A stretch of 64,000 bases of DNA from Octopus bimaculoides (Eukaryota). Position 1 is the first letter of the stretch. Every line of letters begins with the position of its first letter. The notes under the pieces were generated by a model. It worked only from the letters and a program-made list of their open reading frames with translations. It did no database searches and was not told the origin of the DNA. Where the stretch lies: assembly GCF_001194135.2 (NCBI RefSeq), contig NC_068982.1, positions 55,819,215 through 55,883,214 of the forward strand, written 5' to 3'. This document shows positions 17,758-61,451 of the stretch, one piece after another. Position numbers and translations under genes: made by a program.

Positions 17758-17935
17758 CCTTCCACACAATGAGCAGCAGTGACTATCCACAGTGGATGAA
17801 CTAGAACTCCTCCACATCTGTGCCACGGTTGACCAGCTGATATTATTTGTAATGACACTTGCCAAGGCCATCGTCCTGGCATGCTAGGCTGACCACCGAT
17901 GATATATGCGGTATTTATTATCTCTCCACAGCGTT
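17758..17935 (-). CDS. Internal exon encoding the activation peptide and N-terminal part (through the catalytic His) of an S1A trypsin/chymotrypsin-family serine protease
   Basis: Manual translation: (E)[58 protein letters not shown](G). Contains [15 protein letters not shown] and TAAHC motifs. Acceptor TACAG| (AG 17937-17936, phase 1) and donor GG|GTAAGC (GT 17757-17756, phase 2). Length 178 nt = 2+58x3+2. Confidence 0.95.
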
Positions 17936-18289
17936 CTGTAGATTAATAATAATAATAATGATAATAATGATGATAATAATAATAACGGCAACAACAACAA
18001 CAAAAAGCAATAATAATAATATAAAAAAAAAAAATAACAACAATAATAACACTTCCTGTATTAATTACATGGGCTAATTAAAAAAATCGAAGACAGTAAA
18101 GAATGGTGCAGTATAGTGTGAAATTACATAAGAAGCGTGTTAAAAAAGGAAAATAACAACGAAACTTTCAAACAAGTGAAACGTCTTAGGATTACTCGTG
18201 GAAACTCCTAAAAACTACGATGACTTTGACCACCAATGCAAGTGCTCTCGTTCAGTTGTCATTCTACAATCTACAAACAATCTCAGGCT

Positions 18290-18810
18290 CATTCATTCGG
18301 ACCGAGCTCGCCACTCTCATCCAGCTTTCAACGAGTTTGACGGGAGTCAGTAAATTTGTCGAAAGTTGGATGTGAGCGAATCTTGAAGTTGATGAAGGTT
18401 TGGTTAGAGTGGAAGGTATCTGTCTTCAGTCCTATTAATATTGATCACTATGCAATCTCTTTCGCCAAAGACACAAAACAGATAAAGACTGCTTGCCCTA
18501 CTCAGCCAAAGAAGGCAGCAGAACGATCTTCACCATGAACTCAGCTGATAGCCGGATCCGTTCTGTCCTACAAGGGTCAACAGATGCTCAACATAACTCC
18601 ATAAGTCAGTAATTCTCGGATACTGTATGAGCGCATGCAAAACGGCTTCGTCGCTCTGTGAGTATTTCGGAACAGACGCTCCACTCCAGTCAGACATGAA
18701 CTTGGTCAAAGCACAGCGATCAGGCAATAATATATGACGGAGGTGGTGTAGGCATTCACTATCTCTGACCAAACTTTCGAGGATAGCTTCTCGATGATGA
18801 CGAGGATAAT
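18290..18810 (-). mobile_element. Decayed L1/Tx1-clade LINE, ORF2 C-terminal region
   Basis: QSDEAVLHALIQYPRITDLWSYVEHLL and AVFICFVSLAKEIA...GLKTDTF resemble Tx1-type C-terminal CCHC and downstream segments; a possible endonuclease remnant (GVIGVYVP) lies at ~19060-19130. Confidence 0.6.
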
Positions 18811-19179
18811 TTCTCTATTGTTTGTCACACGGGTATCGAACAAAAACAACGTTACTGAGATAAAATGCCACAAAAATAGAATGGGGGAGGAAGAAAAAAT
18901 GGAATGTGATGAAATATGAATAGAATACCAATAAGTTATGATGATACGGTAATTTTTATACAAGAAGACGTCCATCTAGGGCCAGTGAAGGAATACCACA
19001 GATCCAGGATCACTCTGACCACTAAAGACAACTGCTTTTACATAAATGTCACTCTCTGATCTTCTGGAGCATGCTGAGAGCAGGCACATACACACCTATC
19101 ACTCCCATTATTGTCATCATTGTAAATAAAACACTATCCTCCAGGAGAAGACCTCCTTCTTCGCCCTCATCTTCCTTTC

Positions 19180-59564: not shown

Positions 59565-59852
59565 GTATGATAAAAAAACATTCAGAGAAATGCATAACGA
59601 AAACACCAGGACTTGGAAGTAGTGCTACTAAGCACTGCACACATCCTACGTAAAACACATTCAATACAGCGAAAATAAGAGCACCACTACAAACCATAAC
59701 ACATACCCAAGGCAGACAGAGCTGCATTCGGTAGTCCAGTGAAAGCACGTGATAAAAATAAGACTACTGAATAATAATAATAATAATAATAATAATAATA
59801 ATAATAATAATAATAATAATAATAATAATAATAATAATAATAATAATAATAA
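59565..59852 (+). mobile_element. R4/Dong-type LINE 3' end with (TAA)n tail
   Basis: VVLLSTAHILRKTHSIQ, then 3' UTR and a long (AAT)n run. Confidence 0.75.
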
Positions 59853-60570
59853 NNNNNNNNNNNNNNNNNNNNNNNNNNNNNNNNNNNNNNNNNNNNNNNN
59901 NNNNNNNNNNNNNNNNNNNNNNNNNNNNNNNNNNNNNNNNNNNNNNNNNNNNNNNNNNNNNNNNNNNNNNNNNNNNNNNNNNNNNNNNNNNNNNNNNNNN
60001 NNNNNNNNNNNNNNNNNNNNNNNNNNNNNNNNNNNNNNNNNNNNNNNNNNNNNNNNNNNNNNNNNNNNNNNNNNNNNNNNNNNNNNNNNNNNNNNNNNNN
60101 NNNNNNNNNNNNNNNNNNNNNNNNNNNNNNNNNNNNNNNNNNNNNNNNNNNNNNNNNNNNNNNNNNNNNNNNNNNNNNNNNNNNNNNNNNNNNNNNNNNN
60201 NNNNNNNNNNNNNNNNNNNNNNNNNNNNNNNNNNNNNNNNNNNNNNNNNNNNNNNNNNNNNNNNNNNNNNNNNNNNNNNNNNNNNNNNNNNNNNNNNNNN
60301 NNNNNNNNNNNNNNNNNNNNNNNNNNNNNNNNNNNNNNNNNNNNNNNNNNNNNNNNNNNNNNNNNNNNNNNNNNNNNNNNNNNNNNNNNNNNNNNNNNNN
60401 NNNNNNNNNNNNNNNNNNNNNNNNNNNNNNNNNNNNNNNNNNNNNNNNNNNNNNNNNNNNNNNNNNNNNNNNNNNNNNNNNNNNNNNNNNNNNNNNNNNN
60501 NNNNNNNNNNNNNNNNNNNNNNNNNNNNNNNNNNNNNNNNNNNNNNNNNNNNNNNNNNNNNNNNNNNNNN
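59853..60570. other. Assembly gap 92 nt downstream of the CBM14 exon; other gaps at ~6283-6614, 11221-11347, 23719-24350, 30855-31058, 32010-32055, 39471-39555, 49447-49456, 55502-55696, 56710-56719, 58426-59100
   Basis: N runs, mostly flanked by simple repeats or SINEs. Confidence 0.98.
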
Positions 60571-60661
60571 ATTAACAAATTAAAGTGAAATTGTAGAATT
60601 AATAAGTATAGTTGAGAAATACATATATATATATATATTCTGGTTACAACAACCGGCTTAC

Positions 60662-61451
60662 CTGTTTCTTTTTTGAAGAATGTGTTGGTTGTAGTCTTTA
60701 TTTTTAGCTGTTCGTCTGTTGACCTTGCTGTTGACCCTGTTGGTATCTTTGTAGTTCTCATCTCCGTCAATGTCGACGTTGGCATTGAGAACTTTTCTTT
60801 CGTTTTGGTTAAAGGCTTCTTATTTTCCCACCATTTTGTTATTTTCCGTGGCCACCACTTCGTGTATAATTTCGAAGTTGTTTTTCGATTATACAATTTG
60901 GTGAACATTGAACCCATTCTCTTAGTTTGAGTACCTAATGTGGATCTGAATACATTGTTCTTTGTAATTAAATTTAACTTTGTTGTTATTGTTGTAGTGA
61001 TTATTTTTGCTGTGGAAGATAATTTTGTTGATGATGTTGGCGCTGATGATGAGGACGTTATTTTTTTCATGTTTGATGATGTTCGCCACCTTTTGGTATC
61101 CGATGTGGGAGAAAATGTAAATCTCTGTAGCAATGAAGTTGTTTTCTTTTTCAGTGTTATACAGTCGTCTTTTGGTGAGTTTAACCACACGCATACTTTA
61201 TATTTTGAGGAAAAGACTGTATTTCCCGGACAAGTCATTTTCCAGGATCTACTCCCGAAACAAATATGGAATGCCTTGCAATCATTTGGATCCCGGATGT
61301 AGAGTTGAGTAAATGAAAATTTCGGACAGTAAGACATGTAAATTGATTTTTGAGGTTTCCGAGCATTGCACTCATTTACAAAGAAAAACAGAGATAAACC
61401 AAGAAAGACTACTGAATATTGCACAAGTCGTATCATACTCAAAACGTACAT
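60662..61451 (-). CDS. First coding exon of a secreted chitin-binding (CBM14/peritrophin-A) protein with a Thr/Ser/Lys-rich linker; 263 aa + 1 nt
   Basis: ATG at 61451 (alternative ATG at 61436) in an AAATC-ATG context. Hydrophobic signal peptide ...VVFLGLSLFFFVNECNA/RK. CPKFSFTQLYIRDPNDCKAFHICFGSRSWKMTCPGNTVFSSKYKVCVWLNSPKDDC has C-x15-C-x5-C-x9-C-x12-C-x9-C spacing, the peritrophin-A pattern (61328-61161). A mucin-like linker follows. Donor CAG|GTAAG has GT at 60661-60660 (phase 1). Acceptor-like CAGs at 61472-61470 and 61466-61464 suggest an upstream UTR exon. Confidence 0.92.

Follow-up and report, generated by a model that had tools for sequence, protein, structure and literature searches.

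Two exons on the minus strand of a 64,000-nucleotide (nt) stretch of Octopus bimaculoides DNA, called the window below, very probably form the 5' two-thirds of one real, intact and already annotated gene. The predicted product is a secreted serine protease with a hydrophobic leader, one CBM14 (peritrophin-A) domain, a long basic linker and a catalytic domain of the chymotrypsin type. The window is 100% identical to chromosome CM046602.1:55,819,215-55,883,214 of assembly GCA_001194135.2; the position is given by coordinate arithmetic. Directly joined, exon 1 and exon 2 encode 322 amino acids (aa). Run against protein databases, this translation is identical (100%, full length) to residues 1-322 of a public protein of 524 aa, present with the same sequence as XP_014782509.1 in RefSeq, under the name 'coagulation factor IX', and as A0A0L8GBA1 in UniProt. 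The gene is already known: its model is public and its architecture is found across molluscs. As a sequence feature it is no addition to public data, the exact protein being carried by both RefSeq and UniProt.

Exon chain and conservation of the gene

All GT/GC-AG exon chains exactly reproducing the 524-aa public protein were searched for exhaustively in the wider locus (L001, 98.9 kb). A single solution is obtained, with six coding exons across 78.9 kb, canonical GT-AG sites, and boundaries of the first two exons exactly at 61451-60662 and 17935-17758. The gene of XP_014782509.1 is the sole gene called in this locus. The enzyme is incomplete in the window, because only the first of its five protease exons is carried there. 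Bovine trypsin and bovine chymotrypsin matched the exon of the catalytic His alone in tblastn, since exons 3-6 are situated past the window start; no further protease exon was found in the window with either query or with the full protein.

The two exons had been put forward in a first-pass annotation made from the letters alone. Strand, positions, phases and junction peptide were all given correctly there, and that the two exons of one gene are spliced directly, in phase 1, over about 42.7 kb is borne out by the identity of the joined 322 aa to XP_014782509.1, by the gap-free ortholog of O. sinensis and by the intron position and phase, which are kept in a paralog and in a gastropod. A reader of raw sequence can thus join exons over about 43 kb correctly by phase logic alone. 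The predicted exon 1-exon 2 junction has gene prediction together with comparative conservation as its footing. The remark that the protease exon is missing from the mechanical list of open reading frames (ORFs) also holds: exon 2 has no start codon giving at least 50 aa, and is therefore absent from that list. The comment there that the exon may easily be overlooked is justified, several public ortholog models being truncated or split across the long intron.

The ortholog of O. sinensis (XP_029658109.2, 'serine protease 42', 525 aa) is 95% identical and has the same six exons, in the same phases, at a gap-free locus. Nucleotide identity between the two species is 95.8% for exon 1 and 97.2% for exon 2, vs 85-92% for the adjacent intron. 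The ratio of non-synonymous to synonymous substitution rates (dN/dS), calculated from small counts, is lowest for CBM14 (0.09), intermediate for the protease (0.17) and highest for the linker (0.44). All three parts are under purifying selection relative to O. sinensis.

The same six-exon, same-phase layout is present in a paralog on the same chromosome (XP_014781704.2, 'serine protease 30'; L004, CM046602.1:19,872,359-19,915,171), at a distance of about 36 Mb, with a first intron of 10.5 kb and a His exon of 172 nt. An older UniProt model of this paralog (P0009, 278 aa) is truncated at both ends. The 'tryptase-2-like' gene of the gastropod Babylonia areolata is compact, 13.7 kb in length, with an intron of 6.5 kb before the His exon. 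Its linker is split over three exons, two of them short linker exons. The His exon is of 178 nt, with a phase-1 intron before it and a phase-2 intron after it; in the downstream exons all phases match the octopus gene, and lengths are the same or within 3 nt. Downstream (3') of the stop codon of the Babylonia ortholog (L003 15832-16659), the last 15-16 codons are repeated in about 14 tandem copies, 60 bp apart.

Table 1. Coordinates of the gene and of its encoded features. Positions are those of the window, except where L001 is given; a slash marks an exon boundary or a cleavage site.
Feature	Position	Strand	Size, sequence or basis
Coding exon 1	61451-60662	minus	790 nt; starts ATG; ends ...AAA GAA ACA G/gtaagc, phase 1
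Start codon and predicted signal peptide, aa 1-30	61362..61451	minus	MYVLSMIRLVQYSVVFLGLSLFFFVNECNA/RK; by hydrophobicity; cleavage site putative
CBM14 / peritrophin-A domain, Cys42 to Cys97	61161..61328	minus	Pfam CBM_14; C-x15-C-x5-C-x9-C-x12-C-x9-C
Linker, aa 98-263 and first base of codon 264	60662..61160	minus	by composition
Intron 1 donor, phase 1	60656..60661	minus	ACAG/gtaagc; O. sinensis AAACAG/gtaagctg, same position and phase; paralog and Babylonia same phase
Intron 1	17936..60661	minus	42,726 nt as assembled; 9 gaps (2,574 N); 36% G+C
Coding exon 2	17758..17935	minus	178 nt; preceded by a tract rich in pyrimidines and ...ttaatctacag/; begins AA CGC TGT GGA; ends GAA GG/gtaagc; phase 1 to 2
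Propeptide Cys266	17930-17928	minus	in exon 2
Putative activation bond Tyr274/Ile275	17906-17901	minus	by homology
Cys304 and Cys320	exon 2	minus	pair aligns with chymotrypsin Cys42-Cys58
Catalytic His319	17771-17769	minus	motif TAAHC
Intron 2, first 17,757 nt	1..17757	minus	whole intron 22,460 nt
Coding exons 3-6	L001 76155-76260, 81713-81887, 86764-86906, 88722-88904		106, 175, 143, 183 nt; outside the window, past its start

Domains of the predicted protein and its molluscan relatives

The order predicted signal peptide, CBM14, linker, S1A protease, as proposed in the first-pass annotation, agrees with the Pfam matches (CBM_14 and Trypsin) and with the hydrophobic leader. Residues 3-25 form the sole hydrophobic segment of the protein, with a Kyte-Doolittle 19-aa maximum of 1.92 at residues 7-25. 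The h-region is of about 13 residues, followed by small residues at -3 and -1. A hydrophobic N-terminus is present in all full-length family members.

The CBM14 domain matches Pfam CBM_14 at E 3.1e-8 (33.4-34.1 bits; cut-off 22.1). Its six cysteines are invariant in five family members, and their spacing fits the pattern CX15CX5CX9CX12CX5-9C quoted for peritrophin-A domains (PMC10619976). An AlphaFold 2 (AF2) model of this segment, built from a five-sequence alignment, has a predicted local distance difference test score (pLDDT) of 76.3. The top 11 Protein Data Bank (PDB) matches to the model are all of the CBM14/peritrophin-A type, at Foldseek probability 0.95-1.00; they include human chitotriosidase CHIT1 (5hbf/6so0), Der p 23, tachycitin, Avr4, Aplysia EHEP, Blo t 12 and Der f 23, and the entries listed are 5hbf, 4zce, 6so0, 1dqc, 4z4a, 8in3/8in6, 2mfk and 5zjl. 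The linker is of 168 residues and basic, with 36% Ser+Thr, 22% Lys+Arg and an isoelectric point of about 11. In the full-length AF2 model (9-sequence alignment), which is weak, residues 100-288 are at pLDDT 21-27 and have no secondary structure; the predicted disorder is consistent with a flexible linker. Linker composition varies across the family: it is acidic in Babylonia, acidic and Asp/Glu/Tyr-rich in the paralog, Pro/Thr-rich and mucin-like in a chiton and a limpet. The linker therefore probably acts as a spacer.

For exon 2, the Pfam Trypsin match covers profile positions 1-45 (E 1.1e-14), the only part of the profile encoded within the window. The whole protein matches positions 1-220 of 220 (PF00089, E 1.8e-58). 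Judged from this translation, the protease is a member of peptidase family S1A with the chymotrypsin fold. The triad His319/Asp371/Ser467 (motifs TAAHC, DIA and GDSGGP) is intact, the Asp and Ser codons being outside the window. Invariant in nine aligned relatives are Cys266-Gly267, I-x-G-G, His319, Asp371, Ser467 and ten protease cysteines, which fit the five-disulfide pattern of chymotrypsin. Among solved structures, the protein comes closest to tryptase, elastase, plasma kallikrein and TMPRSS2 (E 1e-46 to 1e-40); PDB matches to tryptase, elastase and kallikrein are at E 1e-46 to 1e-43.

In the trypsin-like subgroup, Asp189 stands at the base of the S1 pocket, together with Gly216 and Gly226. 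Alignment to human tryptase gives Gly189/Leu216/Asn226 here, and specificity is therefore not trypsin-like, as far as the predicted enzyme can be read by alignment. Gly189 is invariant in the family; residue 216 is Leu in O. bimaculoides, Ala in the paralog and Gly in chiton and limpet. The zymogen motif Tyr274/Ile-Ile-Gly-Gly is present and aligned with the S1A activation site. The P1 residue of this site is Tyr here and Phe, Tyr, Met or Leu in all relatives, never Arg or Lys.

The order CBM_14, linker, Trypsin is also detected by Pfam in the chiton Liolophura sinensis and in the limpet Patella vulgata ('TMPRSS9-like'). The fused architecture is thus counted in five species of three mollusc classes (cephalopod, gastropod, chiton). 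Family-wide characters are a leader, one six-Cys CBM14 domain, a linker of low complexity, a propeptide with Cys-Gly, and an S1A protease with Gly189, the I-[IV]-G-G of which is preceded by a hydrophobic P1 residue. Outside Octopus, the nearest proteins come from gastropods and are 46-67% identical in the regions that align. Many public mollusc models have only one half: CBM14-only in Patella caerulea (KAK6194850.1) and in Logan/ENA contigs, protease-only in Lottia, Candidula, Plakobranchus and Pomacea. They are likely the result of gene predictors breaking at the long phase-1 intron.

A search of a representative library with the CBM14 segment returned mostly multi-CBM14 peritrophins; the few single-domain matches are CBM14-only partial models or genomic exon 1 contigs. 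A large protein search with the alignment of five CBM14 segments gave no matches, the profile being too short for the size of the database. A related exon 1 (P0248, 282 aa) is carried by Logan contig ERR12921336_874008 (L005 1690-1710). It is 64% identical in the CBM14 region, shares the linker motif TKWW..KW and ends GAA ATG G/gcaagtag at the position homologous to the octopus donor, either as the start of a GC-AG intron or as a genuine stop of a CBM14-only protein.

Structure and content of intron 1

Nine of the 11 N runs of the window are inside intron 1, including 56710-56719, 58426-59100 and 59853-60570; none touches either exon. Exon 1 is in block 60571-64000 and is separated from the first gap by 91 nt of intron; exon 2 is in block 11348-23718. 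The frame of the junction is therefore independent of gaps, and only the length of the intron (42,726 nt) is an estimate. The gap-free intron 1 of O. sinensis is 46,583 nt long and aligns collinearly, without change of order or orientation, for 31-32 kb at 83-94% identity (mean 91.4%), which supports block order and orientation across the gaps. In O. sinensis the exon 1 donor is followed by a microsatellite of the (TA)n type, plausibly the reason for the 718-N gap that starts 91 nt after the donor in O. bimaculoides. A 596-aa ORF in the mechanical list (59661-61451, minus) was rejected; it runs from exon 1 through the donor into microsatellite sequence and then across the 718-N gap, and is an artefact of translating N runs.

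The description of the intron as repeat-filled stands in part. Of its non-N bases, at least 28% are in tandem repeats or have a match elsewhere in the intron or in other octopus DNA, a lower bound obtained with a small comparison set; no transposon-type ORF of at least 110 aa was seen in intron 1. The claim that no other leader exon is present between the two exons agrees with what was found: none was detected, and one gene is called in the 98.9 kb. Blocks 38573-39017 (443 nt) and 45263-45616 (354 nt) of intron 1 are each 98.6% identical to O. sinensis; further single-copy conserved blocks are at 42628-42805 and 45989-46181. Stop codons interrupt the conserved blocks in each of the three gene-strand frames, and further copies are absent from the rest of the octopus DNA compared. 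They are candidate regulatory elements, not exons.

In intron 2, short ORFs at 9749-10137, 10356-10562 and 14535-15133 (plus strand) give the impression of decayed long interspersed nuclear element (LINE) or reverse-transcriptase fragments. Four LINE-like-looking ORFs of intron 2 gave no Pfam family match, and no transposon claim is made for that reason. Rfam and tRNA scans of the whole window gave no matches.

Proposed mechanism, rival explanations and known systems

The protein would be secreted as a zymogen, as suggested by homology to chymotrypsinogen. Cleavage at Tyr274-Ile275, autocatalytic or due to a chymotrypsin-like activator, would free the Ile-Ile-Gly-Gly N-terminus and activate the protease. 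In chymotrypsin, the bond Cys1-Cys122 holds the propeptide on after activation. A corresponding Cys266-Cys392 bond, if formed, would keep the CBM14-linker arm covalently on the active protease, and the arm could hold a non-tryptic enzyme on a chitin-containing or similar extracellular matrix. Anchoring to chitin is what we infer from the domain, and the ligand is the weakest step of the mechanism. Action at the beak, at the radula or on prey cuticle may be supposed on the same grounds.

The P1 residue is hydrophobic and the S1 pocket uncharged family-wide; cleavage at its own site would therefore be possible once the enzyme is concentrated on chitin. Factor C of horseshoe crabs self-cleaves at a Phe-Ile bond on binding of lipopolysaccharide. 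It may be imagined, as an improbable reading, that the pan-molluscan family is a self-activating zymogen triggered by the matrix and not a passively tethered digestive enzyme. If true, the family would serve molluscs in pattern recognition or matrix remodelling, as a protease without a counterpart described so far.

Several points weigh against one intact gene with a matrix-bound product. Both octopus proteins (O. bimaculoides and O. sinensis) are computed models. Small linker exons may be hidden in the gaps of O. bimaculoides, as Babylonia has two short ones; the gap-free O. sinensis model has none. Signal-peptide cleavage and the activation site Tyr274-Ile275 are assigned by homology, and the Cys266-Cys392 bond is predicted from alignment of both cysteines with chymotrypsin Cys1-Cys122. 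With a mean pLDDT of 50.8, the full-length AF2 model is too weak for a look at the pocket or at this bond. The 'serine protease 42' model of O. vulgaris (P0115, 289 aa) begins within intron 1 and lacks the His exon, which makes alternative transcripts conceivable. Chitin binding is absent in Aplysia EHEP, where the cysteine spacing is nearly identical, and in Der p 23 (PMC10619976).

The public model might be a chimera of a CBM14-plus-mucin gene and a separate protease gene with its own leader exon, undetected within the intron or a gap. The great length of the intron, its nine gaps, the predicted nature of both octopus proteins and the half-models of other molluscs would all be accommodated, and the end of exon 1 in contig ERR12921336_874008 could be a real stop, not a GC donor. 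Exon 2, however, is entered in phase 1, has neither ATG nor leader and begins at the family-invariant propeptide Cys-Gly, while exon 1 ends at a strong donor of complementary phase, where read-through in O. sinensis meets merely the (TA)n microsatellite. No leader-type exon is present between the exons, in a locus with one gene called, and the half-models are better explained as truncated predictions over long introns. The same fused layout is conserved in five species of three mollusc classes, including the compact Babylonia gene. Conserved layout and an exon 2 unable to start a protein therefore make a two-gene chimera very unlikely. A promoter within intron 1, giving a transcript without leader and CBM14, as in the coding sequence of the O. 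vulgaris model, is equally far from probable. The first 18 residues of that model match 28843-28790 (minus) at 100%, with a GT one base past the last full codon. Its residues 12-64, however, map to intronic 17697-17539 (minus), just downstream of exon 2, at only 64% aa identity, vs 92-100% for the true exons in the same mapping. The model is without leader, CBM14 domain and the exon of the catalytic His, and looks like a mis-prediction or a non-functional transcript.

With one real gene retained as the preferred reading, the role of its CBM14 domain is less firmly set. That it binds another ligand (polyphenols, glycoproteins or another protein), or is just a folded pro-domain, is unlikely but to be taken seriously. 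EHEP, which is among the structural matches of the CBM14 model, has the same fold and binds phlorotannin, and the chitin-contact residues are not conserved even among chitin-binding CBM14 proteins (PMC10619976). Against this, most characterised CBM14 domains bind chitin, as in CHIT1, tachycitin and Avr4 (PMC10619976) and in the insect protease Sp22D (PMC1761132). CBM_14 proteins recur in chitin-containing matrices of mollusc shell and love dart (PMC6368272), and the domain is under strong constraint (dN/dS 0.09). A venom or digestive serine protease of the posterior salivary gland, acting on the cuticle of crustacean prey, is considerably less probable than such a change of ligand. Among genes expressed specifically in the posterior salivary gland of O. 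bimaculoides, serine proteases predominate (PMC7656900), and a chitin-type domain would suit crustacean prey; the gland proteases, however, are reported to form a cephalopod-specific clade (PMC7656900), whereas the closest relatives of the present protein outside Octopus are from gastropods, and the family extends to chitons and limpets, which graze.

Serine proteases of family S1A with one CBM14 domain are documented here as a conserved molluscan family of cephalopods, gastropods and chitons. An experimental description of this family was not found in the searchable literature, nor were papers on either accession or on a molluscan CBM14-bearing protease, the literature searched being incomplete. 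Automatic annotation often splits or truncates genes of the family at the long intron, as in O. vulgaris, Patella caerulea and several gastropod models. The unusual activation site and S1 pocket pose a concrete biochemical question for the turnover of chitin matrices in molluscs (radula, beak, gut cuticle, shell matrix).

Compared with XP_014782509.1, the gene is the same, without difference in sequence or exon chain. Coagulation factor IX has a Gla domain and two EGF domains ahead of the protease. No Gla or EGF match is found by Pfam in the octopus protein, and the RefSeq name is misleading for that reason; factor IX aligns over the catalytic domain alone and ranks below tryptase, elastase, kallikrein and TMPRSS2. 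Chymotrypsinogen and elastase have in common with the octopus protein the fold, the triad, the five-disulfide pattern and an uncharged residue 189, but have neither a carbohydrate-binding module nor a long linker, and are activated by cleavage after Arg, whereas the putative activation bond of the octopus protein follows Tyr. The octopus protein differs from type II transmembrane serine proteases, whose TMPRSS names are borne by some relatives, in the lack of SEA, LDLa and SRCR stem modules (Pfam) and in the position of the hydrophobic stretch, which is right at the N-terminus, with a short h-region, unlike the cytoplasmic tail and signal anchor of TMPRSS, and is probably a cleaved signal peptide, though it may be a signal anchor.

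Sp22D of Anopheles, Tequila of Drosophila and SP23 of Apis are secreted S1A proteases with peritrophin-type chitin-binding domains N-terminal to the catalytic domain, and Sp22D binds chitin (PMC1761132). These insect mosaic proteases have several to 15 chitin-binding domains together with SRCR and LDLa modules (PMC1761132); SP23 of Apis also has C-type lectin and kringle modules, and its predicted specificity is of the trypsin type (D,G,G). The contrast with Sp22D and Tequila drawn in the first-pass annotation is upheld: the octopus protein has one CBM_14 and one Trypsin domain and nothing else in Pfam at E <= 0.01, its predicted pocket is Gly189/Leu216/Asn226, as against D,G,G in Apis SP23, and its P1 residue is Tyr.

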